This document shows, piece by piece, positions 23,560 through 63,131 of a stretch of 64,000 nt of DNA; positions within the stretch are counted from its first letter, which is position 1, and every line of letters starts with the position of its first letter. Under the pieces are notes generated by a model that searched no databases, was not told the DNA's origin, and saw only the letters and a program-made list of their open reading frames with translations. A program made the translations under genes and the position numbers. Source of the stretch: Macrostomum hystrix. Its lineage: Eukaryota > Animalia > Platyhelminthes. Where the stretch lies: positions 744,001 through 808,000 of the forward strand of contig CATNEN010000041.1 of the NCBI GenBank assembly GCA_950097015.1, given 5' to 3'.

Positions 23560-24215
23560 GCAAAATGAAGGACCAGTGATACAAAATGAAGGACCAGTGA
23601 TACAAAATGAAGGACCAGTGATACAAAATGAAGGACCAGTGATACAAAATGAAGGACCGGTGATACAAAATGAAGGACCGGTGATACAAAATGAAGGACC
23701 GGTGATACAAAATGAAGGACCGGTGATACAAAATGAAGGACCAGTAATACAAAATGAAGGATCGGTGATACAAAATGAAGGACCGGTGATACAAAATGAA
23801 GGATCGGTGATACAAAATGAAGGACCGGTGATACAAAATGAAGGACCGGTGATACAAAATGAAGGATCGGTGATACAAAATGAAGGATCGGTGATACAAA
23901 ATGAAGGACCGGTGATACAAAATGAAGGACCGGTGATACAAAATGAAGGACCGGTGATACAAAATGAAGGACCGGTGATACAAAATGAAGGACCGGTGAT
24001 ACAAAATGAAGGATCGGTGATACAAAATGAAGGATCGGTGATGCAAAATGAAGGATCGGTGATACAAAATGAAGGATCGGTGATACAAATTGAAGGACCA
24101 GTGATACAAAATGAAGGACCGGTGATGCAAAATGAAGGATCGGTGATACAAAATGAAGGACCGGTGATGCAAAATGAAGGACCGGTGATGCAAAATGAAG
24201 GACCAGTGATAAAAA
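23560..24215. repeat. Minisatellite, 21-bp unit CAAAATGAAGGAYCRGTGATA, about 31 copies
   Basis: Direct. Confidence 0.95.
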
Positions 24216-24229
24216 AATGAAGGACAAGA

Positions 24230-24445
24230 AGTGTGGGAAACTGCCAAAACTCTCAGTAGCTCAGGGTGGGAAACTGCCAAAACTCTCAGTAGCTCAGTGT
24301 GGGAAACTGCCAAAACTCTCAGTAGCTCAGGGTGGGAAACTGCCAAAACTCTCAGTAGCTCAGGGTGGGAAACTGCCAAAACTCTCAGTAGCTCAGGGTG
24401 GGAAACTGCCAAAACTCTCAGTAGCTCAGGGTGGGAAACTGTCAA
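24230..24445. repeat. Minisatellite, 33-bp unit GTGGGAAACTGCCAAAACTCTCAGTAGCTCAGG, about 6.5 copies
   Basis: Direct. Confidence 0.95.
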
Positions 24446-24565
24446 ACTATAGGAATATTTGCAAGCCCTATATGGGTGGCAAAAGGCCGGGTGGATCGCT
24501 GTGATTCAACTTGCCTGAACAGCAACCATGCAGCGCACTTAACTGTCTGAGCATGCCAGAATTCT

Positions 24566-25273
24566 TCAGCTACCAATACCTGTAGCCGTAGTCGAAGATG
24601 AAGTCGTCTTCATGCGCGTCGCGGTGCCGGACGCGCATCTCACGAGGTCGAAGCCAAAACACTCCAGCTGGCGCACCGGCTCGATGTCGTTGTCGATAAC
24701 GAATATTCGGCTGCCGTTCTCCTGCCGCAGCAGCTGCGGCAGCCAGTCGGTGACGAAACTTGTCTTGAGCCGCACCTCGGCATAGCTCAGCAGGATCAGG
24801 TCGTAGCGACATCCGGAGTCCCACGTGGAGCTGATGTACTCCTCCATGCTGCGGCCCAGGTGAAACTGCTCTGGGAAGCTGCTGATTGGCCCCTGCAGAG
24901 CTAACGCCGCGGCTGCCTCATGGAACGGCTGGAGCGGCCAATCAAACATGTCGACACCGGTGACGCCCACCTGAAGCGGTCCCAGACCCTCCGACTTGGC
25001 CACCAGCTGGAACACGTCCATGGCGGCAAGAAGGTCGCTGCCTGAGCCGCAGCCGAGTGACAGGACCTCATAGCTGGTGCTGCTGGCGTTCGAGCCCATG
25101 ATGGCGTCATAGAGCTCGGCTTGAATCAGCCGGCGAATGGACAGCCGCTTCTTCGGGAGCTCGCACGCTGTGTATGAGGCCCTAAATTCACTAGATTGGT
25201 AGAACCCTAAGTTTCCTTTGTCGCCTGACTGAAGCCAGTTCTCATACGTATAATAGCTCAAGTTAGAGGCCAT
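24566..25273 (-). CDS. MT1: class I SAM-dependent methyltransferase-like protein, single ORF
   Basis: Motif I VLSLGCGSGSDLL, motif II VTGVD, motif IV YDLILLSY, IFVIDN; homologous to MT2, MT3 and MT5. ATG at 25273 is directly preceded by an acceptor-like TTATTTTAACCAG. Confidence 0.75.
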   Translation of the reverse strand: MASNLSYYTYENWLQSGDKGNLGFYQSSEFRASYTACELPKKRLSIRRLIQAELYDAIMGSNASSTSYEVLSLGCGSGSDLLAAMDVFQLVAKSEGLGPLQVGVTGVDMFDWPLQPFHEAAAALALQGPISSFPEQFHLGRSMEEYISSTWDSGCRYDLILLSYAEVRLKTSFVTDWLPQLLRQENGSRIFVIDNDIEPVRQLECFGFDLVRCASGTATRMKTTSSSTTATGIGS

Positions 25274-27096
25274 TGTTCTGGTTAAAATAACCAATTTATT
25301 GACAATCAATAACTAATTCACTAATTGGCCAACTAGCTGCGTTGTGGGTCTGGACTCTGGGTTCTGGGGTGCCAAAAAAGCTGAATTTGGACTGGAAGCC
25401 TAGACAATTTAAAATGGAAATCCCCGGCCTATCACTTGTTGTGTGTTGTACTCGTTCAACCATCGAATAAAGACCTATACTGGGCTAGTGGAATGAGAGA
25501 ACGAATGGATCGATTTTTTAGCCTATGTACAAATGTACATCTCCGTTGCAGCGGTCTTCTAGTTAGTGGGCCGAGGCCAAGTCCATCCGCTGGCTCCTCG
25601 CCTCTTTTCTCACCCTCACGCTAAGTACATGGCCAGCCCTTGCCAAGCCTGCGCCCTGCCCCGGGCCCGGGGAAGAGGTAAACGTTCTTTTGGCGGCCAC
25701 AGCTCAGGGCATGAGGTGGGGCCCCCAAGGCGGCGCCCCGCAAACCCGCATTTAGGGGCGTTTCACTTCTCCCCAAATTTAGCGGGTATGTGTAGGGATC
25801 GCAAAATCCCGGACTTTCGCGAATTTGGTCAATCCCGGGATCAGAAAAAAACCTGATTTTGAAGCTCTGGAATTGGAATTGGAAAATGCACGCCCATAGT
25901 AGTTATTCTTTCAAGAAGCACTAAAATCTGATGCCGTTTTGATATTTTATGTACTTATAAACTAAAGTCTAGAAGTATTATTTTCGTGTCTAACACACGA
26001 GCGTAAATTGCCAACTGGCTAGTTTGCAAATATTGTCTTTAAATTGGTCTTTTTTGCCGCAATTTTCAAGGAGTCAAGGACATCGAAATTGCTAAGCATT
26101 TATTTTTCGACCTTCTAGGAATCTAGGCTGTATGGACTCTGAGTTCTGGCGGTTATTCACAGTTTCGCTATCATTCATCGATAATTAAGAGACAAACCGT
26201 GTTTCAATGGATTCGCAGTTCGCACGCGTTAAATAAATAAATATTTATATCTATATTCACACATAAAAGTGCACAAATCACAAGTCAAAACACAATTAAA
26301 GTGAAATAATAATCATATAAGTTATTCCCGAGATGCGAGACGACGAGTCACGACTCACGAGATATCAATTTGAATTACATAAAACGCTCGAATATTCTTT
26401 TTTTCACTGCCATTGATATAAAATAAATACTTTAATATAAAAAAGTCGCAACTTCGCAAGACTACAACTAACAATGCTCACAAGAATACATAAGTCAAGA
26501 TCAAGAATCAATTTCAAGAATAAATAATTCAAAAGTTGGTATTGTGGAATCGGCGAATCGGGGATCAGGATTCAGGAATCGAGATTTTATATTTTTTAAT
26601 TTTTAGTTAGCGTTAGTAACGCTGCATTGGTGACACTGAATGCAGTATTAGCAGCAAAAAAACACAACCTAATATAGACATCATATTATTGTTAAGGTGT
26701 AAAAGTGGCCCATTTTCTTTCCTTTTTTTGTTTTAACAATATGGTTCCGAGATTTGAAATTTAGGGATTCAGTATTGCGATCTCAAGGTAAGTGCAATTC
26801 ACTGCGCGTCCCGGCCGGGGGCCGATCAGCCGTGAATTCCTCAGTTTTGTCCTAGCATAACAAACAGTTGTATATTTTTCGTAATTCGTCAGGTGTTGCA
26901 ACAAAACTTGCATTAGTTTCTTGCTAATTTTTTATTACATTTTTAGGACATAGTAAAAAACATTGTAAATTTAATTACAGCATAAAAAAAGAATATTTAC
27001 TGTTTAAACTAAAGTATAGTAGTAATTGAAACGCCTTCAAAGGATCGTAGTGAGAGAATTTTCATTTTGTTTTTATGCCAATATGTTAGTACAATT

Positions 27097-30000
27097 CACT
27101 GAGGGGTTCGAAGAGTAGCTCACTGAGGGGTTGGGTGAGTAGCTCACTGAGGGGTTGGGTGAGTAGCTCACTGAGGGGTTGGGTGAGTAGCTCACTGAGG
27201 GGTTGGGTGAGTAGCTCACTGAAGGGGTTGGGTGAGTAGCTCACTGAGGGGGTTGGGTGAGTAGCTCACTGAGGGGTTGGGTGAGTAGCTCACTAATGGA
27301 TCGAGTGAGCAGCTCACTCAGGGGTTGGGTGAGTAGCTCACTGAGAGGTTGGGTGAGTAGCTCACTGAGAGGTTGGGTGAGTAGCTCACTGAGGGGTTGG
27401 GTGAGTAGCTCACTGAAGGGGTTGGGTGAGTAGCTCACTGAAGGGGTTGGGTGAGTAGCTCACTGAGAGGTTGGGTGAGTAGCTCACTGAGGGGTTGGGT
27501 GAGTAGCTCACTGAGGGGTTGGGTGAGTAGCTCACTGAAGGGGTTGGGTGAGTAGCTCACTGAAGGGGTTGGGTGAGTAGCTCACTAATGGATCGAGTGA
27601 GCAGCTCACTGAAGGGGTTGGGTGAGTAGCTCACTGAAGGGGTTGGGTGAGTAGCTCACTGAAGGGGTTGGGTGAGTAGCTCACTGAGGGGTTGGGTGAG
27701 TAGCTCACTGAGGGGTTGGGTGAGTAGCTCACTGAAGGGGTTGGGTGAGTAGCTCACTCAGGGGTTGGGTGAGTAGCTCACTGAAGGGGTTGGGTGAGTA
27801 GCTCACTGAAGGGGTTGGGTGAGTAGCTCACTGAGGGGTTGGGTGAGTAGCTCACTGAGGGGTTGGGTGAGTAGCTCACTGAAGGGGTTGGGTGAGTAGC
27901 TCACTGAAGGGGTTGGGTGAGTAGCTCACTGAAGGGGTTGGGTGAGTAGCTCACTGAGGGGTTGGGTGAGTAGCTCACTGAAGGGGTTGGGTGAGTAGCT
28001 CACTAATGGATCGAGTGAGCAGCTCACTCAGGGGTTGGGTGAGTAGCTCAATGAGAGGTTGGGTGAGTAGCTCACTGAGAGGTTGGGTGAGTAGCTCACT
28101 GAGAGGTAGGGTGAGTAGCTCACTGAGAGGTTGGGTGAGTAGCTCACTGAGAGGTTGGGTGAGTAGCTCACTGAGAGGTTGGGTGAGTAGCTCACTAATG
28201 GATCGAGTGAGCAGCTCACTGAAGGGGTTGGGTGAGTAGCTCACTGAAGGGGTTGGGTGAGTAGCTCACTGAAGGGGTTGGGTGAGTAGCTCACTGAGGG
28301 GTTGGGTGAGTAGCTCACTGAGGGGTTGGGTGAGTAGCTCACTGAAGGGGTTGGGTGAGTAGCTCACTCAGGGGTTGGGTGAGTAGCTCACTGAAGGGGT
28401 TGGGTGAGTAGCTCACTGAAGGGGTTGGGTGAGTAGCTCACTGAGGGGTTGGGTGAGTAGCTCACTGAGGGGTTGGGTGAGTAGCTCACTGAAGGGGTTG
28501 GGTGAGTAGCTCACTGAAGGGGTTGGGTGAGTAGCTCACTGAAGGGGTTGGGTGAGTAGCTCACTGAGGGGTTGGGTGAGTAGCTCACTGAAGGGGTTGG
28601 GTGAGTAGCTCACTAATGGATCGAGTGAGCAGCTCACTCAGGGGTTGGGTGAGTAGCTCAATGAGAGGTTGGGTGAGTAGCTCACTGAGAGGTTGGGTGA
28701 GTAGCTCACTGAGAGGTAGGGTGAGTAGCTCACTGAGAGGTTGGGTGAGTAGCTCACTGAGAGGTTGGGTGAGTAGCTCACTGAGAGGTTGGGTGAGTAG
28801 CTCACTGAGGGGTTGGGTGAGTAGCTCACTGAAGGGGTTGGGTGAGTAGCTCACTGAAGGGGTTGGGTGAGTAGCTCACTAATGGATCGAGTGAGCAGCT
28901 CACTCAGGGGTTGGGTGAGTAGCTCACTAATGGATCGAGTGAGCAGCTCACTCAGGGGTTGGGTGAGTAGCTCACTGAGAGGTAGGGTGAGTAGCTCACT
29001 GAGAGGTTGGGTGAGTAGCTCACTGAGAGGTTGGGTGAGTAGCTCACTGAGAGGTTGGGTGAGTAGCTCACTGAGAGGTTGGGTGAGTAGCTCACTGAGG
29101 GGTTGGGTGAGTAGCTCACTGAAGGGGTTGGGTGAGTAGCTCACTGAGAGGTTGGGTGAGTAGCTCACTGAGGGGTTGGGTGAGTAGCTCACTGAAGGGG
29201 TTGGGTGAGTAGCTCACTGAGAGGTTGGGTGAGTAGCTCACTGAGAGGTTGGGTGAGTAGCTCACTGAGGGGTTGGGTGAGTAGCTCACTGAAGGGGTTG
29301 GGTGAGTAGCTCACTGAAGGGGTTGGGTGAGTAGCTCACTAATGGATCGAGTGAGCAGCTCACTCAGGGGTTGGGTGAGTAGCTCACTGAGAGGTTGGGT
29401 GAGTAGCTCACTGAGAGGTTGGGTGAGTAGCTCACTGAGGGGTTGGGTGAGTAGCTCACTGAAGGGGTTGGGTGAGTAACTCACTGAGGGGTTGGGTGAG
29501 TAGCTCACTGAAGGGGTTGGGTGAGTAGCTCACTGAGAGGTTGGGTGAGTAGCTCACTGAGAGGTTGGGTGAGTAGCTCACTGAAGGGGTTGGGTGAGTA
29601 GCTCACTGAGGGGTTGGGTGAGTAGCTCACTGAGAGGTTGGGTGAGTAGCTCACTGAGGGGTTAGGTGAGTAGCTCACTGAGGGGTTGGGTGAGTCGCTC
29701 TCTGAGAGGTTGGGTGAGTAGCTCACTGAGGGGTTGGGGTTAGTAGCTCACTGAGAGGTTGGGTGAGTAGCTCACTGAGAGGTAGGGTGAGTAGCTCACT
29801 GAGGGGTTGGGGTTAGTAGCTCACTGAGAGGTTGGGTGAGTAGCTCACTGAGGGGTTGGGTGAGTAGCTCACTGAGGGGTTGGGTGAGTCGCTCTCTGAG
29901 AGGTTGGGTGAGTAGCTCACTGAAGGGGTTGGGTGAGTCGCTCTCTGAGAGGTTGGGTGAGTAGCTCACTGAAGGGGTTGGGTGAGTCGCTCTCTGAGAG

Positions 30001-30560
30001 GTTGGGTGAGTAGCTCACTGAGAGGTTGGGTGAGTAGCTCACTGAGGGGTTGGGTGAGTCGCTCTCTGAGAGGTTGGGTGAGTAGCTCACTGAGAGGTAG
30101 GGTGAGTAGCTCACTGAGGGGTTGGGGTTAGTAGCTCACTGAGAGGTTGGGTGAGTAGCTCACTGAGGGGTTGGGTGAGTAGCTCACTGAGGGGTTGGGT
30201 GAGTCGCTCTCTGAGAGGTTGGGTGAGTAGCTCACTGAGGGGTTGGGGTTAGTAGCTCACTGAGAGGTTGGGTGAGTAGCTCACTGAGAGGTAGGGTGAG
30301 TAGCTCACTGAGGGGTTGGGGTTAGTAGCTCACTGAGAGGTTGGGTGAGTAGCTCACTGAGGGGTTGGGGTTAGTAGCTCACTGAGAGGTTGGGTGAGTA
30401 GCTCAATGAGGGGTTGAGTGAGTAGCTCAGTGAAGGGGTGGGTGAGTAGCTCAATGAGGGGTTGAGTGAGTAGCTCAGTGAAGGATTATGTGAGTAGCTC
30501 ACTGAGAGGTTGGGTGAGTAGCTCACTACTGGATCGAGTGAGCGGCTCACTCAGGGGTTG
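27097..30560. repeat. Large minisatellite, 25-26-bp unit GGGTTGGGTGAGTAGCTCACTGA(A)G(G/A), about 135 copies, with a 610-bp higher-order duplication
   Basis: Direct; near-identical blocks offset by 610 bp (ORFs 27975-28244 and 28585-28854); recurrent variant AATGGATCGAGTGAGCAGCTCACT. Confidence 0.95.
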
Positions 30561-30605
30561 GTGAATAAAAGAAATTATATAAAAAATTTTACCCAAATAA
30601 TTCTT

Positions 30606-31334
30606 TTACACTTTTTGAAAGGCCAGGCAGATAGTTTTTTGTGCATTTTGGACCTGCCGGAAGCCATAGCTCATGAGCTTCTTGACTGATCGAATGTTGT
30701 TATCGATCACAAAGATCCTGCTGCCCTCGTCCCGAAGCAGCTGTGGCAGTCGTCCGGTGACCAATTCTAGCAACAATTTCACCTCAGCGAAGCTCAGAAT
30801 GATGAAGTCGAACTTTTCATTTCTTGACAGCGAGTTGATGTGCTCTTCAATGCTTCGATGAAAGCGAAATCGATAGACGAAGCGGTTGCCGGATTTCTGC
30901 AAGGCAATATCGTTCTGCGCCGTTTTGAATGCATCCGTTGACCAATGGTGCAAGTCGACGCCGGTGCAATCGACATCCAGCTCAGGCAGGTCTGCTGATG
31001 ACCTGCTGGCGGATTGAAACACCAGCATGGCTGCCAGCATGTCGCTGCCAGGACCGCAGCCGAGCGACAAAACTCTGAACCGTGTTCTACCTGTTAACTT
31101 GGCAGTTGAGACGATGGCAGGCCTCATCTCCCTGCCGATGAGGCTCTGAACCAGCTTTTTCTTTTTTTGCAGCTCATGGCTTGTGTAATCTTTGCGGAAC
31201 ACTCGGCTTTGCCAGAACTCCAGGTTTCCTTTGTTCTTGGAGACTTCCCATTTCAGAAAGATCTCAGACTTATCCAACATTGTATCTAAGACCCGTAATG
31301 TCGAGCTTGAGTGTGTGGAGTGAGTTGTTCTCAT
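30606..31334 (-). CDS. MT2: class I SAM-dependent methyltransferase-like protein (start uncertain: 31334 or 31280)
   Basis: VLSLGCGPGSDML, CTGVD, FDFIILSFAEVKL, IFVIDN; N-terminal KGNLEFWQSRVFRKDYT matches MT1 KGNLGFYQSSEFRASYT. Confidence 0.78.
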   Translation of the reverse strand: MRTTHSTHSSSTLRVLDTMLDKSEIFLKWEVSKNKGNLEFWQSRVFRKDYTSHELQKKKKLVQSLIGREMRPAIVSTAKLTGRTRFRVLSLGCGPGSDMLAAMLVFQSASRSSADLPELDVDCTGVDLHHWSTDAFKTAQNDIALQKSGNRFVYRFRFHRSIEEHINSLSRNEKFDFIILSFAEVKLLLELVTGRLPQLLRDEGSRIFVIDNNIRSVKKLMSYGFRQVQNAQKTICLAFQKV

Positions 31335-31840
31335 GCCAGGACATGTTCTCCGACAATAAAAGGACAGAAAGTAACGAATTTTCCGCGGCAATGCCGGCAA
31401 CGCCACCCCAAAGGTTATTTTTAGCATCTGCTTACGTTGCTGTGGTAGCATCCGTGATTTTCCACTTCTCTGGTGAAGTAAATCTGCCCATTTATTCTGC
31501 CAAGTAAATCTGCCAAGTGGCATTAATTATTATTTTTATTTTGTCTATTTATATGAAATTGTTTATTTATATTAAAGTTTAAAAAAATACTCAAATACTC
31601 AAAAACTCAGACAAAACTGGAAAAACATAACGGCAATATCATTGTTTGTTCTTAGGGATTGTTTTTAGAAAAAGCATCTGGATAAATATTAGAATAAATA
31701 TGCTTGTTTTAGTGAGGCATATCGTCTCAACTGAATAAGCATTTCAGAAAAAAAACTTTTAACCATAAATATTAGAAAAAAACGACTGGATAAACACTTT
31801 TAAAGTACATAAATAAAGGTTATTATTTTAAGCGGCATCG

Positions 31841-32803
31841 CTAATATGGTTTAAAAAGAGTCCTACAGGAATTATTACAACATGAAGGGTCTCTAACTAA
31901 AAATATGGGAGCTTTTTCAACGCGGGGCTCGGATTCAAAATAACAGTGATTCCTAGTGAGTTCATTTCTGAGCATAGAAAACACATTATCGATGACGAAG
32001 ATGCTGCCTGGGTCGCTGAGAATCTTCGGCACGGCCTCCCTCAGCAGCCGCAGCTTTTGCATGGCCCCGGCGTAGCAGCACACCACCAGGTCGAATGTCT
32101 CCCGAGTTGCAACGCAGTGATTCACGAACTCAGTACAGTCGGCCTGATGTGTTCTCCAATAGGCTGCGAAATCGGGACTGGAGGCCTCCAGTGTGTCTTT
32201 GAACACTCTGTCGAGCTCGCTGTAGTCCCAGTGCTGCTTGTCGACTCCGACCAACTCCAGCGTGAGTGGCCAGCCGTCTGACAGATCTCTAAAGGCCCAG
32301 ACGACAGCCAGCAGGTCTGTGCCGGGCCCGCAGCCAAGAGACAGGACGCGCAGAGGCCGGAGACTCGTTGGAGTCTTGTTCTCAAGGGCTAAGAAACGCT
32401 GTAAGAGTTCTCCGACTCGAGGCTTGATCGTTTCGCAAACCAATTGCGCTCTCGGAATTAGTTTCGCTGCGGTGTACTCAGCTCGAAACTTCGAATTCTC
32501 ATAATATTCGTCCTTGTGTTTGTCCTTAGCGGTTTTCCACTGGGTGTACGAGTATTCAGCAGTGGCCTCCGATTTCCCGTTGAGGGGAAGGGCTTCGGCT
32601 TCTTCTAGTGGAAGCTCCTGAGCGTCCTTTGGCTGCACTGCGGCTCTGGTCAGAGGCGGTTGCCACGCGCTCAGTGCGAGCGTGCCATTAGTTGCAGAGC
32701 CTTCGCAGGTTAAATCCTTATTCTGCCAGGCCTGCGTCATGGCTTCTTCAGGAAGAGTTCTCTTTTCAATTGTGTTTTGCTCGTTCATTTCTCTCGTTTC
32801 CAT
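31841..32803 (-). CDS. MT3: class I SAM-dependent methyltransferase-like protein, 320 aa, single exon
   Basis: VLSLGCGPGTDLL, LVGVD, FDLVVCCY, IFVIDN; uninterrupted ORF with an upstream TATA box. Confidence 0.8.
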   Translation of the reverse strand: METREMNEQNTIEKRTLPEEAMTQAWQNKDLTCEGSATNGTLALSAWQPPLTRAAVQPKDAQELPLEEAEALPLNGKSEATAEYSYTQWKTAKDKHKDEYYENSKFRAEYTAAKLIPRAQLVCETIKPRVGELLQRFLALENKTPTSLRPLRVLSLGCGPGTDLLAVVWAFRDLSDGWPLTLELVGVDKQHWDYSELDRVFKDTLEASSPDFAAYWRTHQADCTEFVNHCVATRETFDLVVCCYAGAMQKLRLLREAVPKILSDPGSIFVIDNVFSMLRNELTRNHCYFESEPRVEKAPIFLVRDPSCCNNSCRTLFKPY

Positions 32804-32846
32804 TTTACTGCTCTCTGAATAAACGTTGCTGTCAGAAGGTGGGGAC

Positions 32847-32854
32847 TATTTATA
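32847..32854 (-). promoter_or_regulatory. Putative TATA box (TATAAATA) of MT3
   Basis: Minus-strand TATAAATA 44 nt upstream of the ATG, with an initiator-like TTATTCAG about 25-30 nt downstream. Confidence 0.45.
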
Positions 32855-33404
32855 CTTAAACTGGAGCGGCATTACACTGTTCTTGGAATATCCAACAGAA
32901 TGTACATAAAAATGATGTACTCGGGGTTAATTTTAGTTAGTCTCCGTCCGGACAATCTGTGACTCACAACCAGAGCACTACGTTTGTACGTTTCAGAGTT
33001 AAAGCTTTTGTCTCGAGAGCAGGTACAATGCAGGAATTCTAGGGGGAGGGGTGCTGGGGTTGGCGGGACAACTCATGGCTCTGCCATGGTGCAGCCGGGA
33101 AAATTGCTTGTTCCAGTCGCTGGGGGACTTAACCGGAATCAACAACAAAAGCAACAAAAATCAACAACAACAAGAAACTTTATCAACAAGGGGAAGGGGT
33201 AAAACTTACTCAGGCGTTTCACCCCCCCACCTGGACCGTACTCAAGAGGTTTGGCTCAGACCACTAGCCAATTATCATCCCAAATGGACACAACGCGGAA
33301 CGCAAGCCCGACCAACACCGCTTCACCTGGAAATGGAAGACAGTGGACTGGCCAAGCTGCCGCATTCACGTTGAGCTGCCAAGCAAAGTCAGCAAGTCAA
33401 CCAT

Positions 33405-34256
33405 TCATGTATCAGCAGCCGGGGCAGCTGCAACTGCCCATGTCGGTGACAGTATCTGACTATCCATGTATCAGCAGCCGGGGCAGCTGCAACTGCCCAT
33501 GTCGGTGACAGTATCTGACTATCCATGTGTCAGCAGCCGAGGCAGCTGCAACTGCCCATGTCGGTGACAGTATCTGTCTATGCATGTATCAGCAGCCGGG
33601 GCAGCTGCAACTGCCCATGTCGGTGACAGTATCTGACTATCCATGTATCAGCAGCCGGGGCAGCTGCAACTGCCCATGTCGGTGACAGTATCTGACTATC
33701 CATGTGTCAGCAGCCGAGGCAGCTGCAACTGCCCATGTCGGTGACAGTATCTGTCTATGCATGTATCAGCAGCCGGGGCAGCTGCAACTGCCCATGTCGG
33801 TGACAGTATCTGACTATCCATGTATCAGCAGCCGGGGCAGCTGCAACTGCCCATGTCGGTGACAGTATCTGACTATCCATGTGTCAGCAGCCGAGGCAGC
33901 TGCAACTGCCCATGTCGGTGACAGTATCTGACTATCCATGTGTCAGCAGCCGAGGCAGCTGCAACTGCCCATGTCGGTGACAGTATCTGACTATCCATGT
34001 ATCAGCAGCCGGGGCAGCTGCAACTGCCCATGTCGGTGACAGTATCTGACTATCCATGTGTCAGCAGCCGAGGCAGCTGCAACTGCCCATGTCGGTGACA
34101 GTATCTGACTATCCATGTATCAGCAGCCGGGGCAGCTGCAACTGCCCATGTCGGTGACAGTATCTGACTATCCATGTATCAGCAGCCGGGGCAGCTGCAA
34201 CTGCCCATGTCGGTGACAGTATCTGTCTATCCATGTATCAGCAGCCGGGGCAGCTG
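33405..34256. repeat. Minisatellite, 59-bp unit containing hairpin GGGCAG-CTGCAA-CTGCCC, about 14 copies
   Basis: 59-bp period; no spacers. Confidence 0.95.
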
Positions 34257-34653
34257 TTCAGTGGGATAGCCAATCTTCGAACGATCGATTTTAAATATTG
34301 AAAAAAATCGCAAGACCGACTAAAGAACACTTTTAATTTTAAGACAGCAAGTCATGAGTATCTCGTGTTTTTGTGATAAGTTCCAATCACACATAATCAC
34401 ACATTGTGATTAGAATGTGTGATTACGCATTAACAAATTAGGTTTGGTTTGGTTAACAAATTAATCAATTAATAGTTTACAAGACTAAACTATGGAAAAT
34501 TTAGCAGGACTAAAAGTTTGTTGCATAATTTGCGAGAAAGATGGGTCTCTTTGCAGTGGGCCAGCTAGACACAAAGTAAAGCAAGTCAAATGTGAGCCCA
34601 TATTCCAGATCAGCGCAGTAGTTGTCGATGACGAAGATGCTGCCTGGGTCGCT

Positions 34654-34665
34654 GAGAATCTCCGG
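34654..34665 (+). repeat. Left target-site duplication GAGAATCTCCGG
   Basis: Identical 12-mer at 38712-38723; single near-identical copy (GAGAATCTTCGG) at the empty site in MT3. Confidence 0.92.
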
Positions 34666-34736
34666 GCTTCCTCAAGTGGCCCAGCCTTCACGAGGCGGGA
34701 AGCGGACGGGGCATCAGCCCTGGCAAAAAGGACCAC
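34666..34736 (+). ncRNA. HDV-like self-cleaving ribozyme at the LINE 5' end
   Basis: P1 GCUUCCU/GGGAAGC; P2 GUGGCCC/GGACCAC (one mismatch); P3 GCC/GGC; L3 UUCACGA; P1.1 UC/GG; P4 CGGGGC-AUCA-GCCCUG; J4/2 GCAAAAA with catalytic-position C34724; G1 is the first nt after the TSD. Confidence 0.85.
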
Positions 34737-34896
34737 AACAACAGAAGGGAGATGGAAGGAGGGAGTGGGCGCAGGCCCACCCCGAATCACCAACCCTTTT
34801 TGGCAACGACGACAGGAAGTAGCCGACCCTGGCGTCGATAAAACTAAGGCCAACCAACCCTGGAGAAGAGGAGGAGAGCGGAGGACGGAGGGAGCA

Positions 34897-37800
34897 ATGT
34901 GCAACGACGACGAGAGACGGGCAGCAGGAGAAATTAAATGGAGACTGGCGACAATCGAAAAGAACCCGGGACCTAAAACGGTGCAAGAGAGAAAAGCGAG
35001 ACAGATTAGACGCAAAAAGAGGAGAGAGAGAAGGAGGACCAGACGGAAAATCACAAGGAGAAACTGGGCCGGACAAGAAAATTTTCGAATATCGACCTGG
35101 AATGTACGAAGGGCCAACATATACGACAGTCGTTTCGGGGAAATAATAAAGAAGACCATCATGGAAGGATGGCAGATCACTATGATCACCGAACTTAACG
35201 CCCGAAGCGAAGGGATAAAGACATACCACCACGGCGATAAACAAGTAAGCCTGATCCATACAAAAAAGGTGGGCATCCTATTGGACGAAGACACAGCGAA
35301 GCTGTGGAACGACTCGGGGAGATATGTGAAATTCGCAGACAGAGCAATCTTCGTTAGAATCTATGACATGAGCCTGATAAGCGTGTATTACCCAGTGCAA
35401 GGCAGCAGCACATACCATGCAGAATTAAATAACCTCTGCTTCGAGATAGAGAAATACATACACATCGAAGCGAAGAACAAGCCGCTATTGATAGGAGGAG
35501 ACTTTAATGCCCAGATAGGGCGATCACCCGAGGCAAACGGGCAACACAGGGGGAAGTTTGGCCTCCCGCAAACAAACAAACAAGGTGAGGACTTGATAAA
35601 CTGGGTAACGGAGAATGAGTTGACTTGGCTGAATTCGTTCTGTAATGCAAAGAGGCGCGGAACCTGGAGGAACCCGTCCAACCACAGGTGGTACGAGCTG
35701 GACGGCTTCATCACCAGATCGAAGGACAGAACCCGACTGATCAAATCAATCAAACTACATCAAATTGGGGACCTCTCAGACCACGCCCCCAGAACGGTCA
35801 TACTCAAAAAACTTCTTCTACAGCCAGAGACCGAGGAAGAGCGCGCAAACAGACACAAGGCAAAGAAGAAGAAACGCGCAAACATCGACTGGCAAGTCCT
35901 CCACTCCCAGGAGAAGAGAGAACAACTCCAAGATGTGATGACGAAACGCTACACAGAATCGACCGGTAAGACCTGGAAAGAAACAGCAAGGATCATAGTT
36001 GAAAGTGCTAAAGAGGTGTGTGGAACAAAAACCAAGCAAACAAATCCATGGATGATCGGGCACGAGGAAGAGTGCCAGGAGAACAACCGCGAACTAGCGG
36101 AAGCCCTGCACAGACGCAACGCGGCCAAAGAAGTCCAACCAGACAACCTAAGAAGACAAGCCCTAGAACTCGCAAAACGGACCGTACAGGAGGTTAGAAA
36201 AAGACACAAAGCAAACCTACGGAAATGGGAAGAAGAATGGTGGGACAAGCTGGCGGACGAGTGCAGAGAAGCAGCGGACCTAGGGAAAATAGGACTAGTC
36301 TATCAGAAACTAAGAATACTAGACCACAGAGGCAGCACCAACAACTGTCAGACGGACACCATATTCAGCGAAAAAGAATTTAAGGAACACATGGAAAAGG
36401 TGTCAGGTACGCGCTTTGAGAACGACCCGCAGACAATGATGGAACTGCTGAAATCGATCAAGGTGAGAAAACCAATTAACGGCGACATGACGTTGACCGA
36501 GTTAACCGCACCGATCACGGACGCGGAGATCGACAGGACAATGATGGAGATGACGGACAAGGCCCCGGGGGAAGACGAAATAAGGATAAACTACCTCAAG
36601 TACGCGCCCACGGACATCCGGGCAGCGACACGGGAACACATAAGGTACCTATATCATCACCCAGCAACCGAATGGGAAGACGAAGAGAAGTTAGGGATAG
36701 TCATACCACTTTTCAAGAAGGGCGACCGCCGGGACCCAGCGAACTACCGAGGGATCTGCCTATTACCAATGCTGAGCCGCATACTGGCCCGCATACTGGC
36801 CCGCATACTGGCGAAAAGAATCCGAAACTGGGCGGAAGCCCAAGAACTGTTTGATGACAACCAGTGTGGCTTCAGACAAGGCCGGTCCACAGCGGACAGT
36901 GCCCAGATTTTTGTCAGGCTACACGAGGATATCCGCGAGTATCTAGCGGCCAAGGAAGGAGCGATGGACCAGAACATGGAACATGAAAACATCGCAATAC
37001 TGCTGGACATCCAGAAGGCGTACCCGAGGATCTGCAAACCGCTTCTGTGGGAGATGCTAAGACGCCTGAAGATGCCAGACGCCATAATCAAGAAGCTACA
37101 AGACCTCCATGAAGAAACAGCTTACAAAGTACAAGGAAGACAAGCGACGAGCGAGGCATGGTACCCGGAGAGAGGATTAAGGGAGGGCTGCCCGACCTCA
37201 CCAGTCCTATTTAACATCTACCATCAGATATGTATCCGGAGAGCGGAAGAGATGCGGAGGGAAGCGGCGGAGGCGAAAAACACACCATGCGGAATCGCAT
37301 GGGCCTACCCTGTGGGAAACGCACTACCACCCCAACGCACAAATCAATTCAACTCCGAGATGAAACTACATCATTTCCAAACGTCCCTGTTCGCGGACGA
37401 TACTACCCTGATAGGAAATCGCGACGAACTAAGGGAAGGCCTGGAGATCACAAAAAGATGTATGTTAGATTTTGAGGAGAAGACGAACGACGCTAAGGAG
37501 GAGATCATGAGACTGGGAACGGAGGAAGGCGGCAACATCAGAATGTTAGGCAGCTGGACGGACAGGAAACGCGACATGAAAGAACGGACTCAGAGAGCCA
37601 TGAAGAGTTGGCAAGCAATCAAGAAACGGTTCTGCAGATGCAAACTGACCAAGAAAACGCAAGCCAAAGTGGTAGAGGCATGTATTGAGAGTGTGCTTCT
37701 CTTCCACGCAAACGTGCGCCCGTTCCACATTTCGGAGATGAAAGCGCTGCAAAGGAGCGTAGATAAGATATACCGCTACATATGGAGCGCAAAGGAAATG

Positions 37801-38655
37801 GAGCCCCTACGCGAGATGGAACAGCGCGGATACAACATGCAAGACATCAGGACCGAACTCAATGTAGGGACGATCAGAATGAAGATCGAAAAAGCCCATC
37901 TGATACGAATGGGACACGTCCTCAGGATGCCCGACGACCGACAGACCAAGAGGGCGGTCTTGGGTTGGTTCAAGGGCCTGGAACACCTACCGAAACCCAG
38001 AAGAAGGAAAAATTACACCATAAATTTCTGGAGAAAACTCGCGAAGGAAGGGGGACTTGAACCGACAGAAGTCGAACGTCTCGCCAAAGACAGGAAAAAA
38101 TGGAAGAGCTGGGTGGCCGAGAGGATCCGACACATTGAGAAGTGGGATCACAGCCAAGGAAAACGGAGCACCGGCCCCCCACCGGAAAGCCGGTGTGCCC
38201 CGAGGAGAGAAGAGTCGAAGACCAGCGGATTCCAATGCGAGTATGAAGGCTGTGGCAGAATTTGTAAATCGAAGGCAGGACGCGCGATACATCAAAAAAG
38301 GATGCACACACGACCGGTATCCCCGGTAAGGTTCACGTGCCCAAGATGCGCGGAATCTTTCCTACAAGAAGCCACAAGCAAGAACCACATGAAAGTGTGC
38401 AGAGGAGAGAAAGAAACATCAGATGGTAAAATGGAATGTACTAGCTGCAACAGAGAAATATCGAAGTCGAACATGGCTCGCCACAGACGAGCCTGCAAGA
38501 ACCCGATGGGACAAACGGCCGGGACACAGGCACAACCCGACAACGGAGTGGTGGCACGCAAGCACATCAGGAAGAGGAAGGACTGTGACAGGTGCGGCAG
38601 GAACCTAACGGCCACTAACATGGCCAGGCACCAGCGCACATGCACAGGAAATTGA
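34897..38655 (+). CDS. LINE polyprotein: AP endonuclease + reverse transcriptase + four C-terminal Zn fingers (first in-element ATG at 34897)
   Basis: APE: ISTWNVR, ITE, GGDFNAQIG, ELDGF, LSDH. RT: KAPGEDEI, NYRGICLL, QCGFRQGRST, LDIQKAYP, GLREGCPTSPVLF, LFADD. C2H2 CEYEGC...HQKRMH plus three CxxC...HxxxC fingers. Confidence 0.93.
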   Translation: MCNDDERRAAGEIKWRLATIEKNPGPKTVQERKARQIRRKKRRERRRTRRKITRRNWAGQENFRISTWNVRRANIYDSRFGEIIKKTIMEGWQITMITELNARSEGIKTYHHGDKQVSLIHTKKVGILLDEDTAKLWNDSGRYVKFADRAIFVRIYDMSLISVYYPVQGSSTYHAELNNLCFEIEKYIHIEAKNKPLLIGGDFNAQIGRSPEANGQHRGKFGLPQTNKQGEDLINWVTENELTWLNSFCNAKRRGTWRNPSNHRWYELDGFITRSKDRTRLIKSIKLHQIGDLSDHAPRTVILKKLLLQPETEEERANRHKAKKKKRANIDWQVLHSQEKREQLQDVMTKRYTESTGKTWKETARIIVESAKEVCGTKTKQTNPWMIGHEEECQENNRELAEALHRRNAAKEVQPDNLRRQALELAKRTVQEVRKRHKANLRKWEEEWWDKLADECREAADLGKIGLVYQKLRILDHRGSTNNCQTDTIFSEKEFKEHMEKVSGTRFENDPQTMMELLKSIKVRKPINGDMTLTELTAPITDAEIDRTMMEMTDKAPGEDEIRINYLKYAPTDIRAATREHIRYLYHHPATEWEDEEKLGIVIPLFKKGDRRDPANYRGICLLPMLSRILARILARILAKRIRNWAEAQELFDDNQCGFRQGRSTADSAQIFVRLHEDIREYLAAKEGAMDQNMEHENIAILLDIQKAYPRICKPLLWEMLRRLKMPDAIIKKLQDLHEETAYKVQGRQATSEAWYPERGLREGCPTSPVLFNIYHQICIRRAEEMRREAAEAKNTPCGIAWAYPVGNALPPQRTNQFNSEMKLHHFQTSLFADDTTLIGNRDELREGLEITKRCMLDFEEKTNDAKEEIMRLGTEEGGNIRMLGSWTDRKRDMKERTQRAMKSWQAIKKRFCRCKLTKKTQAKVVEACIESVLLFHANVRPFHISEMKALQRSVDKIYRYIWSAKEMEPLREMEQRGYNMQDIRTELNVGTIRMKIEKAHLIRMGHVLRMPDDRQTKRAVLGWFKGLEHLPKPRRRKNYTINFWRKLAKEGGLEPTEVERLAKDRKKWKSWVAERIRHIEKWDHSQGKRSTGPPPESRCAPRREESKTSGFQCEYEGCGRICKSKAGRAIHQKRMHTRPVSPVRFTCPRCAESFLQEATSKNHMKVCRGEKETSDGKMECTSCNREISKSNMARHRRACKNPMGQTAGTQAQPDNGVVARKHIRKRKDCDRCGRNLTATNMARHQRTCTGN

Positions 38656-38711
38656 CAGGTTCTCCAGGGCCCCATACCTCACGGTGACAAAGGGCGAAAG
38701 AAGAAGAAGAA

Positions 38712-38723
38712 GAGAATCTCCGG
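38712..38723 (+). repeat. Right target-site duplication GAGAATCTCCGG
   Basis: Follows the (GAA)n tail; MT4 sequence resumes here. Confidence 0.92.
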
Positions 38724-40130
38724 CACGGCCTCCCTCAGCAGCCACAGCTTTTGCATGGCCCCGGCGTAGCAGCACACCACCAGGTCGAATGTCTCCCGAG
38801 TTGCAACGCAGTGATTCACGAACTCAGTACAGTCGGCCTGATGTGTTCTCCAATAGGCTGCGAAATCGGGACTGGAGGCCTCCAGTGTGTCTTTGAACAC
38901 TCTGTCGAGCTCGCTGTAGTCCCAGTGCTGCTTGTCGACTCCGACCAACTCCAGCGTGAGTGGCCAGCCGTCTGACAGATCTCTAAAGGCCCAGACGACA
39001 GCCAGCAGGTCTGTGCCGGGCCCGCAGCCCAGAGACAGGACGCGCAGAGGCCGGAGACTCGTTGGAGTCTTGTTCTCAAGGGCTAAGAAACGCTGTAAGA
39101 GTTCTCCGACTCGAGGCTTGATCGTTTCGCAACACCCTGGCGCTTTTCGAGGTATCTCGGTGGTGTGCCGCGCTCTGAACGCCGGATTCTCATAGAAACT
39201 GATATAGTCCTTGTCCTGAGCGCTGCTCCAATCTTCGTATTTCGACTGAGCTCCGCGCTGTTTTAATCAGCCTTGGCGCCAGGTTCCTCCAGCTGTGGTT
39301 CCAGTGTGTCAGTCGGCTGCACCGCGGCGCTGGTCATAATCCCATCAGGGACAATCGTTTTTCTTGCTGGCGCAGTCTTCACCTGTGCTCAAGTTTGAGT
39401 CCTGGCACTGGACTGGATCAGTTGAGCCCTCGATGAGTGTCTCGTTAGGTGTCATTGCTTGAGTCATGGCTGCTGCTTCAAGATCGCATGTTGTTGTTTT
39501 GTGTAGGTCGCTTGTTCATTTTAAATGCCTTCTTTTGAATGCGGAATAGTGGGCTCCTGATTGGCTCGAAATTGGGCTGTCCGAGACTTTCCGCAGAATT
39601 TCCGTGCAAGATTTTGGCCATTGAGCAAGCTATTTTTAGTATACTGTCTGCGTCTGTAGTTCCATGAGCCCTACTCAAGCATCGGACAGGGAGGGGTGAC
39701 TCTGCTGGTGAAGCTAAGTGTACATTCCTGCATTCACGTCTGTGTACATTGAACTGCAGCACCCAACTCAATACCCTAACTATTGAGAACACGTTAGAAA
39801 ATCTCTACTGACGACTCCCTGCTCAGGCCTTGCTTAGATTAAAAGTGCTACACTCCTGTTTGAACGGAGGATGTTGCGTCTCAATGGGTCACGGCGCACG
39901 GCTTGGGCGATTGACCCGAGCTCATAAAAAAGATTCATGAGGAAAAAATGAAGATATTTAATAGGTTTCTTAGGAGAGTTTGTATTTTAATCAGCGTAAT
40001 TTCATGAATTTATGAGTTTATTTATAGCATAAAAAAGATTTCCAAACAAATTTCTGCAGTGATCTCGATGGGTATTCCAAGTCACATCCTCGAGCAAGAA
40101 TCTCAAAACCCAGCTCTTACCGCTGCCGCA

Positions 40131-44400: not shown

Positions 44401-47400
44401 ATTCTTCAAGTCATCAGCCAGAAACTGGGATGTTAACCACTCAGATATAGACCACTAATTCTTCAAGTCATCAGCCAACAGTAAAACAATGCCAACCCCC
44501 AGGCCACCAATCAGAAAAAGCAACAATGGTGTTGATGCTGATGACACTGCGTAGAAGTCTTTGACATAAAAGCTGATGAGTTCGTATTAAATTCGTGTAT
44601 CTCTCGAACCTCTTATGAACTGATTTCAGAGATTTTACTTAACATCAATTCCGAAGATCCTAGCGATCTTCTCCATCCCGCAAAACTTTGGAAACCGCAA
44701 GTTTAGCAAAATTTTGAACGAAGGGTAAGTCAACTTCCACTTTGAGCTTAGTCGGCTCAACTCAGAGGGATGGAGCAAGGTGCTGGTTTTCACGCTCGAA
44801 TTTTAGGCACATTATTTACTGCGGGACGTCGGAACTGAGCCGGATGAAGTCTTTTTTTTGGAACTTCCAGCACAAACTGGAGACCACGTCTAGCAACATA
44901 ATCAGGGTGTGCCTTCTGCAGAGGTGAGCCAATTCACGCTACCCGCAGTTGTGATAAGTTAACTGGTTTAACGTTAAATCTAAATCTAGATAAACTCTTG
45001 CTCACCACGGCAACCATCCGAACCCTACTCACACAGCAACAAAATCTCCGACCAGATCAGTTGGTTTCTTTGGTCATTCTGCGGTCGGGTCACATTAGTC
45101 TTTGGCAGCCCGAGCGAATGCAACTTCATGATTAAAAACTGCAAGCTGAATACGGCGGAGGCCATCATCCTCACCTCGGAGGCTGGAGGCACTCGATCGG
45201 AATTCGAAGCGGACAGGATCAACTACCTGCGCACCATCAGGCTGAAGATGTGCGCTCCCGAGTGCCGAATCATTGTGCAGATCAAGAGCAAGTATCATAA
45301 GGTCTGAAATTCAATATCTACTTTCATTTTGTGTGCTTATTCAGTTTGACGTCATTCCGCAATTGTAATGACGTCACTCAGAAAAAAAATACTTGATTAC
45401 ACCGCCCCGATTGGGCCATATGTGCAGCTACTGCGCGGCGCATCTGAAGGCTGCGTACGGCTATTCAGTCCATGGACTGGGGGGACGCCAAACCCACCCT
45501 CAATTACCCCAGCTGGTACCCACTTAACAGCTGGGTGAACTGTAGCAATGCAGAGTTAAGTGTCTTGCTAAAGGACACAAATTGTTCCAGTGGAATCGGG
45601 AATCGAACCCCGACCTTTCAGTCGTGAGTCCGACGCTCTAACCACAAGGCAACAACCTCCTGAGAAAGCTCAAGCTTTAATCTCTGAACCCGCCAACTAT
45701 CGCAGCGATCCTACCGAGCGTTGCCTCTCTGGCGCGTCAGGGCGAGCAAGCCGGGCTCTCTGCCACCGGACGCGGTCCTGTGCGACAACCAGATTCTGCT
45801 GGGCCTCATGGGTATCAACTCGTTAGCGCCGGGCATGGCCACCTTGCTAATCAACCTGCTGAGCTACCGAGAGTCGCAAAGCTCTGAGGACGACAAAAAG
45901 ACAGACGAGGATGACGCTGCAGACTGCGATTACTTACGCTGGCGTAGTGCCTACAGAACTGGCGTCAAAGTAAAATTCTACTGCGTGGGCTTCACAGCCA
46001 AGCACCGGAATCGGAGCTTCAAATCGTTGGCACTGGAAGCCTTTCAGGTTGAGTTTTTCGTTTCTCTCGTGCGAAGCTATATTGACTTAGAACCATTGCC
46101 ACAGGCAGGAGCACTTTGAAACTTTTTTAATTAAAACTTTTCTGGCCCTGAGACCAGAAGTATTCGGTTTTGAAAGATAAACGTGGGCGCCACTTCAAGC
46201 AAACTTCATCAAAATTCTGTTTTTGTCGGCGTCACAGAACAAGCGGAATTCTCTCGGCATTTCATCGAAGAGGACGCAGATGAGAACTAAGCGAGCAATG
46301 ATCTGTTTCCAACTTTTTTGTTTCGCGTCCCTGAGCTTTAGTTTTCCCTGGACACAAATTTCGTTTTACACCGCAGGCGCACAGTGTGCTCATCGTCGGA
46401 GTCTGCATGGTAGACAAGCCTACTGGCATGATGACCGGTGTCATCAACCCGGCATACGACCCTGGCTTCATCATCAACCCCAGCACCATGAAGGCTTTCG
46501 TCATCAGCCGGGATATCCAATCTGTGCGCAGGTTCGCCGCAGGGTCGGCTAACGGTTTTGGCGGCGTACTGGTTCATGGTGAGATCCAAATATAATTTCA
46601 ATCCTCTCATAGCCTGTCAATAGACAAAGTTTCTGGGCTTATTTAAAAAAATGCACGCTTACGAATGATCAAATACTCGATGAACATCTCTATTTGTTTC
46701 GATCTAAAGACAGTAAAAATAGAGTACAAGTCACAAAATGAAAGTTAAAATCCACTTCCTAAAATCCGTGTTCCTGCGAATCCGCGATCAATCCGCGATC
46801 CGCGATCATTTATAACATTGCAGAGTGGATCGAAGAACCACCCAAGCTTCAAAGACAATCCGCCTACAAGTCGACACCCGGTCTGCACACTGAGCCGCTG
46901 CAATCAACGTCGGCAATTGCATCAAACACTTCAGGGCCACAAGAGGAGCGTCGCCTGGAGGAGTGGTACCGTGACAGAATTGACGCGCGCTGCGACAGTC
47001 CGCGTGAGCTTCACGCCGCCGAGCACGAATTCAACCCGCTGCTGGACATCACCGGCACGCTGCATTGGGCGCCGAACCGTCGCTGTCGGAAGTTTACCAT
47101 CGACGAAGCGAAAACTATCAACTTCCGAGGCCACGTGCTGGTGGCCATCATCGGGCCACTGCAGCATCCAATCGGTCTGTCCTCGCTGGTGCTGCCATTG
47201 CGTAACTGCTCGATTCCGGTCGACCAGCTCAGCGACATTGTCATTCTCGGAAACGCCGAGTCCATCGAGAAGCACGAGTGGCGCGGCATTCGCAACTTTC
47301 CCTTCATCTACGTGGTAGACGGCAACGGAGTATACCCGCAACACCTGTTGTACTGTCGAGCTCAATGGGCCGCGGCGATGACTGTGATCAATTTGGCTCA

Positions 47401-58800: not shown

Positions 58801-59111
58801 CTGGGTGTTTATCGTCGACGAAACGTCAGCCAAAAGAGCGCTGATTCGCCCTATACGCATGACGGCTGGTTTGTGATGACCTACCCGGACGCTGAGACCC
58901 AGATTGACACGAAGGACAAGGTAACTTTCGCTGGGGTGTCTAGCTAGATTTATAGATGTGGGCCTAGTGTCATTTTGTGTTCAAAATACTTCTTGTCCTG
59001 CTTCAAATGTCTACGGGAGCAATGCTCATTTCCCCAACTCGCTTTCAGATTTTCTGCTTTGCGCCACCCTCTCAGAGGCGAGGGACGTTGGTGTCATTTG
59101 TGAATTCGTGA
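49847..59111 (+). CDS. Slo-B: second Slo1/BK-family channel paralog. Approximate exons 49847-49866, 50057-50249, 50428-50489, ~50573-50675, ~51420-51531, 53879-54030, ~54288-54492, ~55212-55300, 55391-55507, ~55600-55860, ~56040-56456, ~56605-56806, linker exon(s) 56976-57310, ~57500-58478, 58745-58920, 59049-59111
   Basis: Same exon architecture as Slo-A, including a 20-nt first coding exon (MAEDQL vs MTDEEL); S4 FSFLRALRL; pore VTASSVGYGDITP; RCK1 and RCK2 motifs. Confidence 0.88.
50920..51120 (-). mobile_element. SINE family A, degenerate copy 2
   Basis: Aligns to 17020-17267 (CCCAAGCCTTCTCTCCGCGGCTGC, AAATGAATG, GAGCTCAGGGA). Confidence 0.7.
51532..53769 (+). repeat. Intronic minisatellite, 56-bp unit GTGAGTTTCTTCAGTTCTTCAATGATGCGCATTGRTTATGAGCACACCTAGTAGGA, about 40 copies, beginning at the S3-exon splice donor
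   Basis: Direct; the first unit's GT is the intron's first dinucleotide. Confidence 0.95.
54668..54890 (-). mobile_element. CORE-SINE family B, copy 2 (head incomplete, abutting a family A SINE)
   Basis: CAGTCCATGGACTGG, AACAGCTGGGTG, GTGTCTTGCTAAAGGACACAA shared with copy 1. Confidence 0.75.
54900..55158 (-). mobile_element. SINE family A, copy 3
   Basis: Head GGGTGCGTGGCAGAGCGGTTAACGCG...GAGTTCGATTCC; aligns with copy 1. Confidence 0.8.
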
Positions 59112-59848: not shown

Positions 59849-60135
59849 GAGGTTGTAGCCTAGTGGTTAGGGCGTCGGACTCACGACTTGAAGGGCGGGG
59901 GTTAGATTCCCGACTCCACTGAAACAATTTGTGTCCTTTAGCAAGACACTTAACTCTGCATTGCTTCAGTTCACCCAGCTGTTAAATGGGTACCAGCATT
60001 AGCTGGGCTAATTGAAGGTGGTTGTGGCATCCCCCCAGTCCATGGACTGAACAGCTGTACGCAGTCTTTAGATGCGCCGCGCAATAGCTGCGGCTGTGCT
60101 GTCGGCTGCACATCTGACCCGATTGGGACAGGTGT
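59849..60135 (+). mobile_element. CORE-SINE family B, copy 3 (full length)
   Basis: Head GGTTGTAGCCTAGTGGTTAGGGCGTCGGAC...GTTAGATTCCC; CORE-like block 59929-59992; 3' end GGTGTAAT shared with the other copies. Confidence 0.82.
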
Positions 60136-62983: not shown

Positions 62984-63010
62984 CTGCAGACGAAATTAAA
63001 TTCAAACGAG

Positions 63011-63131
63011 CTGCTATAGCCAGACTGCCATAACTATGCTGCTATAGCCAGACTGCCATAACTATGCTGCTATAGCCAGACTGCCATAACTATGCTGCTA
63101 TAGCCAGACTGCCATAACTATGCTGCTATAG
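63011..63131. repeat. Minisatellite, 28-bp unit CTGCTATAGCCAGACTGCCATAACTATG, about 4 copies
   Basis: Direct. Confidence 0.92.

Follow-up and report, generated by a model that had tools for sequence, protein, structure and literature searches.

A fast-evolving family of small, putative class I methyltransferases with copy turnover in the flatworm Macrostomum hystrix

To characterize a cluster of methyltransferase-like genes in the flatworm Macrostomum hystrix, we analysed a 64,000-nucleotide stretch of its genome (GenBank assembly GCA_950097015.1, contig CATNEN010000041.1, positions 744,001 to 808,000), hereafter the window, in whose coordinates positions are given unless a contig is named. 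The genes belong to an undescribed family within the very well-known superfamily of S-adenosylmethionine (SAM)-dependent methyltransferases, and not to a new kind of system. Five open reading frames (ORFs), the intact MT1, MT2, MT3 and MT5 and the broken copy MT4, all lie on the minus strand, as a first-pass annotation of the sequence had stated. MT1 (24566-25273) is a 235-residue coding sequence, probably complete and single-exon, counted from the first ATG (25273) of an ORF that spans 24566-25309. The 305-residue ORF of MT2 (30606-31523) enters its methyltransferase domain at about 31298, and the stretch upstream of the domain may be untranslated. MT3 (31841-32803, 320 residues) comprises an acidic extension of ~85 residues followed by the methyltransferase domain. 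MT5 (60755-61858, 367 residues) is a large exon that holds the domain and forms part of a predicted multi-exon gene, with upstream exons at about 61936-62702.

When nine paralogous domains are aligned (A2), column identity averages 35% and 17 columns are invariant, namely W18, K24, Y39, S84, G86, C87, G88, G90, G115, V116, D117, W121, D167, L191, G195, D201 and N202 in MT3-domain numbering. These columns coincide with the motifs that the first-pass annotation had picked out as common to the copies: W..K..FY..FR..YT, VLSLGCGPGSDLL, GVD..W, FD.I.LSF and IFVIDN. Residues S84, G86, C87, G88, G90 and D117, which make up motif I and the acidic residue ending strand 2, are kept in the extended family too; motif I of MT1 reads GCGSG. 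Pairwise identity is 42-48% within a subgroup of MT1, MT2 and two paralogues from elsewhere in the genome (L006 and L007), 92% between copies L003 and L004 on contig C39, and 25-38% for the remaining pairs. Regular expressions for the (D/N/S)PP(Y/F/W/H), PC and ENV motifs matched none of 10 domains, in keeping with the earlier statement that DNA methyltransferase signatures are missing. We thus rejected both a DNA N6-adenine or N4-cytosine methyltransferase, for lack of (D/N/S)PP(Y/F/W/H), and a DNA cytosine-C5 methyltransferase, for lack of the PC dipeptide and of ENV.

MT4, previously listed as an intact gene, is a pseudogene divided in two by a retrotransposon. Its 5' part (38713-39251, minus strand) has three stops upstream of the domain and no ATG, and its core is ~99% identical to MT3; its 3' part (34510-34665, minus strand) runs from …SDPGSIFVIDN… to a stop codon at 34510-34512. 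Between them, on the plus strand, lies a 4,047-bp long interspersed nuclear element (LINE), a retrotransposon of the type without long terminal repeats, which encodes an endonuclease and a reverse transcriptase and carries a (GAA)n tail. In the window, where no occurrence is expected, the 11-bp AGAATCTCCGG is present at exactly two places, 34655-34665 and 38713-38723, which delimits the inserted element as 34666-38712 flanked by a target-site duplication. Rfam returned no match at E <= 0.1 at the 5' end of the element (34666-34736), although this leaves room for an HDV-like ribozyme there. Removing the LINE together with one copy of the duplication puts the 3' part in frame with the 5' part. 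MT4 also has a histidine in place of the invariant tyrosine of FR..YT. The MT3 and MT4 cores differ at ~3 positions in ~470 nt, a similarity that spans both sides of the insertion point, and their flanks are unalignable; near-identical cores within unalignable flanks indicate a recent gene conversion between MT3 and MT4, followed by a very recent insertion of the LINE. The description of the copies as otherwise highly diverged therefore holds for the other paralogues, at 25-48% identity, but not for this pair.

To place the proteins structurally, AlphaFold models were made of the MT3 domain (9 alignment rows; predicted local distance difference test, pLDDT, 79.7; predicted template modelling score, pTM, 0.80) and of MT1 (31 alignment rows; pLDDT 86.8; pTM 0.85). 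The MT1 model comprises seven strands arranged as in class I enzymes (residues 67-74, 101-108, 135-139, 159-163, 189-194, 208-213 and 216-222), preceded by helices 2-15, 22-25 and 28-60, which carry the W/K/Y/FR..Y motif. Across the family, two or three helices precede the core and bear this motif of invariant aromatic and basic residues (W-x5-K ... Y ... F-R-x2-Y). The SAM loop is intact (S-x-G-C-G-P-G-x-D-L), G-V-D ends strand 2, and strands 4 and 5 carry F-D and I-D-N, respectively. The domains thus combine the seven-stranded sheet with flanking helices, the glycine-rich motif I and the strand-2 acid that characterize class I SAM-dependent methyltransferases, and the Rossmann layout read earlier from the motifs is confirmed by the models and the fold searches.

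Searched with Foldseek, both models matched class I methyltransferases or related Rossmann enzymes only (E 1e-4 to 6e-7, TM 0.3-0.5), with a probability of 1.00 to many methyltransferases; across the fold searches, methyltransferase matches number in the hundreds. An exhaustive VIA-align search gave Z 10-15 to more than 50 methyltransferase chains, with human histamine N-methyltransferase (HNMT, 1jqd) as the top match of both models, at Z 12.1 (root-mean-square deviation 4.1, 186 aligned) and Z 15.3 (4.0, 176 aligned), the N-terminal helices being covered. Within about 1 Z unit below it stand SABATH-type, DsyB, catechol-type, MnmC, METTL13 and Rsm22/METTL17 (Z 12.1-12.7) rows. HNMT was not among the PDB sequence matches of profile searches at E <= 10 and, with a second profile, at E <= 1. 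Given so many near-equal matches, the class I SAM-methyltransferase fold is certain as far as the models go, and the subfamily cannot be read off the predicted structure.

Searched with a profile, the 220-Mb genome yielded 11 full-length open domains, of which MT1, MT2, MT3, MT5 and a further copy, MT5', lie on the contig of the window (C41), four on C39 and one each on C7 and C25. There are three pseudogenes (MT4, C41:813017-813618 and C41:831789-832328), ~15 MT1-derived fragments and three copies of a sister subfamily. When the window was extended by 30 kb, a total of nine family loci came to light within 64 kb, each of them on the minus strand. MT5' arose from a 19-kb tandem duplication with 99.6% DNA identity, in which window positions 52622-63132 correspond to 71869-82373 (C41:815869-826373). 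The duplication continues between window-equivalent positions 66411-71873 and 85312-90574, which are ~98% identical, and there produced the second methyltransferase pseudogene. We also noted a 982-bp segment at 46893-47874 and 57502-58483, 99% identical, which overlaps ORFs of 255-322 residues and recurs in the duplicated block beyond the window.

In a maximum-likelihood tree, the MT1-5-type copies group together against a set of more distant relatives described below, the P0002 type (support 80/79). MT1 pairs with L007 (94/88) and MT2 with L006 (87/85); since each gene pair is also adjacent and co-oriented, this pairing indicates that a two-gene block was duplicated between contigs C41 and C39. 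Long, unplaced branches lead to MT3 and to the copy on C25. The pairwise ratio of non-synonymous to synonymous substitution rates (dN/dS) is 0.29-0.46 for older pairs, and the dN/dS values as a whole indicate genuine, if relaxed, purifying selection. The genome-wide copy count, the tandem duplication and the pseudogenes bear out the proposal of a lineage-specific expansion with birth-and-death turnover. Two of the C39 copies, L003 and L004 (L003:1351-2667 and L004:1408-2943; C39:1.18-1.22 Mb), carry a long C-terminal Q/E/R-rich repeat of EERLQKLQ units that differs in length between them, and both finish in a cysteine-rich tail (…NCCPCC…).

An exhaustive profile search of 1.84 billion representative proteins returned a single strong match (E 1.6e-44), followed by 90 weak ones at E 6.6e-10 or weaker. 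The strong match, P0001, is the 766-residue Macrostomum lignano protein A0A1I8FYA5 (Mlig012580), whose cluster contains proteins of 178-1004 residues. Its identity is 46% to MT5, across 273 residues, but just 29% to MT3, and the tree joins it with MT5 at a support of 100/99; by these comparisons, MT5 is its orthologue. The N-terminal part of P0001 aligns co-linearly to the short exons at 61936-62702, which makes MT5 a conserved family member predicted to be long and multi-exon. Other routes to a relative or a description returned little. Neither MT3 by itself nor a nine-member profile found a match in a word-based protein search, a result for which the length filter partly accounts; NCBIfam held no useful match; and a literature search on Macrostomum methyltransferases found DNA and RNA methylation surveys only.

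The next match after P0001, P0002, is a 276-residue protein, encoded on two ENA contigs (156 and 646 kb), that shares both the cap motif (the aromatic and basic motif of the N-terminal helices) and the core. A mixed profile recovered ~18 proteins of this type on environmental contigs of eukaryote-like character and up to 1.36 Mb in length, several of them on one contig, and a profile-profile comparison (hhalign) aligned the flatworm set with the P0002-type set over 181 columns (probability 98.7%, E 3.6e-16). Three loci in the M. hystrix genome (C24:4195226-4195681, C4:121154-121405 and C24:932937-933251; L048-L050) form the sister subfamily and are closer to the P0002 type than to MT1-5; on present sequence evidence, this places two subfamilies in one flatworm, both part of a broader family whose sampling is sparse. 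The copy at C24:932937 sits within a 965-residue open frame with long low-complexity tails. A further relative, of 253 residues, was found on an 8.7-kb contig labelled 'MAG: bacterium' (metagenome-assembled genome; CBDDTI010000303.1, L043); at 37% GC and with just one long ORF along 7.6 kb, this contig looks eukaryotic and was probably mis-binned into a bacterial genome. Rfam and Pfam scans of its other ORFs returned nothing indicative of a host. The P0002-type profile gave weak matches or none against metagenome and viral contigs.

Part of MT1 has been carried elsewhere in the genome by a transposon. Dispersed fragments are 94-95% identical to MT1 across 385 and 99 bp, and they lie in a repeat of at least 18.7 kb, 97-99.7% identical between copies, that encodes a KDZ-type transposase (PF18758). 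This giant KDZ (Kyakuja-Dileera-Zisupton) element is located at C11:6070000-6088757 (L029 and L032), with at least 14 further copies (L014-L026 and L028), and is evidently very young. It has internal 82-bp satellite arrays besides the ~500 bp of captured MT1, and a second, shorter methyltransferase-like fragment was found ~11 kb away within the same element. Minisatellites also lie near the genes: immediately 3' of MT1 (23561-24446), arrays with units of 21 and 33 bp; farther on, a 3.5-kb array of a 24-bp unit between MT1 and MT2 (27096-30561) and an array of a 59-bp unit between MT3 and the 3' part of MT4 (33406-34256). The first-pass annotation had noted a minisatellite beside each copy; we rejected a special association of gene and minisatellite, since 15 arrays, on average one in every 4.3 kb or so, make up 21.8% of the window, and at that density an array beside each gene is expected by chance.

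We judge it reasonably probable that the MT genes are real paralogues in an undescribed, fast-evolving family of small (~216-250 residues) class I SAM-dependent methyltransferases that act on a small planar acceptor. The family itself is established by its fold, its intact SAM-binding motifs, its sequence constraint and its copy turnover. In the mechanism that we envisage, SAM would be bound in the usual way, the aromatic and basic N-terminal cap would close over the cofactor to form an acceptor pocket, and the methyl group would be moved to a nitrogen or oxygen of the acceptor. A small molecule of the amine or phenol type, in specialized or detoxifying chemistry, seems slightly more likely as acceptor than an RNA base, since the stand-alone copies are minimal catalytic domains, their turnover resembles that of metabolic families, and the closest solved structures belong to small-molecule enzymes. 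The Rsm22 and PF11312 neighbourhood set out below makes an RNA base almost as probable. The family has grown in a Macrostomum-type flatworm by tandem, segmental and inter-chromosomal duplication. Copies have been lost to LINE insertion and point mutation, sequence swapped by gene conversion, and fragments taken up by a DNA transposon.

Several observations weigh against this reading, and in particular against its small-molecule acceptor. The structural ranking is flat, with HNMT ahead by just 0.4 to 1.2 Z units, and the first Foldseek match for MT1 is a tRNA enzyme of the MnmC type (MnmC2). The nearest profile neighbours with characterized members are of the Rsm22 and PF11312 types. Enzymes of both types are RNA-directed. 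The dS of the older pairs is near saturation, and the young pair C39a/C39b has a dN/dS of 0.74. Lastly, MT5, L003 and L004 carry long extra regions, which means that not every member is a minimal enzyme.

The alternative that survives best, a possible though clearly less favoured one, is that the proteins are rRNA or tRNA base methyltransferases like those of the Rsm22/METTL17 or PF11312 groups, in which the aromatic cap would stack on a flipped-out base. With hhalign, the flatworm profile aligned to a bacterial Rsm22-like cluster at E 7e-21 and to a PF11312/C3a159-like cluster at E 3.3e-20. Both alignments begin at query column 26-27 and pair FR..Y with the R..Y of the clusters (Y-x5-R-x2-Y), whereas two other, generic clusters from the tail of the search that have no cap (C4 and C6) align from motif I onward only, at E 1e-15 to 5e-14. 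Among the 85 weak matches, the specific Pfam families are PF11312 (16), PF09243 (10), CheR (9) and the cap guanine-N7 methyltransferases (6), and PF11312 is weakly matched by seven of the nine flatworm copies. Structure adds METTL17 and Rsm22 chains at Z 12.1-12.7 and the first place of MnmC2 noted above. The hhalign clusters were picked by their matches to the same profile, which inflates these E values, and we used them only to call 'Rsm22-like' a fair description of remote similarity, as distinct from membership.

Membership in these groups is not supported by the Pfam scores, all of which are sub-threshold. Methyltransf_23 is matched weakly by nine of nine copies. PF11312 reaches E 6.7e-4 at best and at most 19 bits against a gathering score of 26, the window copies scoring 12-15 bits, and PF09243 (Rsm22) is matched by none of the nine at E <= 1, let alone at its gathering score. 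The stand-alone copies stop 20-40 residues past strand 7 and so lack the C-terminal region of Rsm22. In METTL17, this extra C-terminal region binds Fe-S; no conserved C-terminal cysteines are present in alignment A2. Moreover, rRNA enzymes are normally single-copy and conserved, in contrast to a 14-member family at 25-48% identity with pseudogenes. We take PF11312 to include yeast Bmt6. That assignment is not stated in PMC3950682, and PF11312 is barely mentioned in the literature searched. The earlier suggestion of an Rsm22/METTL17- or Bmt5/6-like layout therefore stands as remote profile nearness to the Rsm22-like and PF11312/C3a159-like clusters, Y-x5-R-x2-Y included, and falls as an assignment to either family. 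Another RNA-directed candidate, the cap guanine-N7 methyltransferases (PF03291), was rejected: MT3 alone matches, at E 0.04 and 13.4 bits of the 26.6 needed. The best PDB sequence match, RNMT, worsens from E 0.0018 with A2 to 0.18 with a deeper profile (A6), and neither of the two profiles found a PDB sequence below E 0.0018.

The first-pass annotation had raised a horizontal origin as a possibility. It is unlikely that the family was acquired by horizontal transfer from bacterial methyltransferases of defence islands (C3a159 or mad2 type), with an expansion thereafter, and only the remote similarity to bacterial families speaks for transfer. Among 31 members of the extended family, 25 match the PADLOC profile PDLC01079 (C3a159 methyl transferase) weakly, with a best E of 7e-7, and four match mad2; C3a159 denotes cluster 159 of the type III CRISPR accessory proteins (PMC6546367). 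Neighbours in the ESM Atlas are unnamed bacterial clusters, and an intron never interrupts the methyltransferase domain. The bacterial matches, however, are all remote (E 1e-7 or weaker), and the exhaustive search found no close bacterial or fungal protein. Closer relatives are the M. lignano orthologue, the sister subfamily of the same genome and proteins on contigs with eukaryote-like coding density, and the tree holds no bacterial sister group. The argument drawn from intronless copies fails as well, since MT5 belongs to a multi-exon gene. We speculate, as a long shot, that the family and its P0002-type relatives are a eukaryotic offshoot of prokaryotic defence-associated methyltransferases (C3a159/mad2 type) recruited into flatworm genetic conflict. 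If so, the enzymes might, for example, mark or disarm transposon or viral nucleic acids or neutralize a toxin, and such a role would account for their rapid divergence, copy turnover and entanglement with mobile elements.

That the copies are transposon cargo or decaying relics without a host function is improbable. This view would fit the MT1 fragments in at least 14 KDZ transposon copies, the LINE in MT4, the repeat-rich region and the three pseudogenes. The full-length copies, however, lie outside the KDZ repeat, which holds just ~500 bp of MT1; 11 domains are open and keep all SAM-binding residues at 25-48% identity, with dN/dS of 0.29-0.46; and MT5 has an orthologue in another species. 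Descent from a known metazoan METTL or HNMT-type gene is the least probable origin of all: HNMT is the best structural match of both models and Methyltransf_23 is weakly matched by all nine copies, but identity to HNMT is 10-11%, two profiles reached no better than E 0.0018 against PDB sequences and the exhaustive search yielded no named animal protein besides the M. lignano orthologue.

On our favoured reading, that of a fast-evolving family of small methyltransferases acting on a small planar acceptor, the fold is the best-known one for methyl transfer, in a family that has neither a Pfam model nor a solved relative. It offers a clean case of the birth-and-death evolution of an enzyme family within one flatworm genome of a regenerating model genus, with tandem and block duplication, gene conversion, knock-out by a LINE and the uptake of fragments into a giant KDZ transposon all represented. 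A metabolite substrate would point to lineage-specific chemistry, and an RNA or DNA substrate to a new modification system. RNA interference and transgenesis are available in M. lignano.

Compared with known systems, the flatworm proteins find their commonest specific weak matches in PF11312 (Methyltransf_34) and PADLOC C3a159, a likeness that includes the cap motif in the hhalign alignment at E 3.3e-20, although every score falls under the curated threshold. With Rsm22/METTL17 (PF09243), they share the remote Y-x5-R-x2-Y, a motif I of the LSLGCGPG type, the strand-2 TG(V/I)D and the way the later motifs are spaced; they differ from it in being ~220-250 residues long without the additional C-terminal region, and in forming a multi-copy, fast-evolving family where Rsm22/METTL17 is a single conserved mitochondrial assembly factor. 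HNMT resembles them as a compact stand-alone enzyme whose active site is covered by an aromatic cap, and the alignment spans the N-terminal helices and the Rossmann core, but at a sequence identity of just 10-11% this likeness is structural only. The P0002-type proteins and the sister copies, despite an identity of just ~20-28%, are true homologues across the whole domain including the cap, with Y..W...Y..FR..Y, S.GCGPG.D, G.D..GW and (V/I)LV(L/I)D shared between the two sets.

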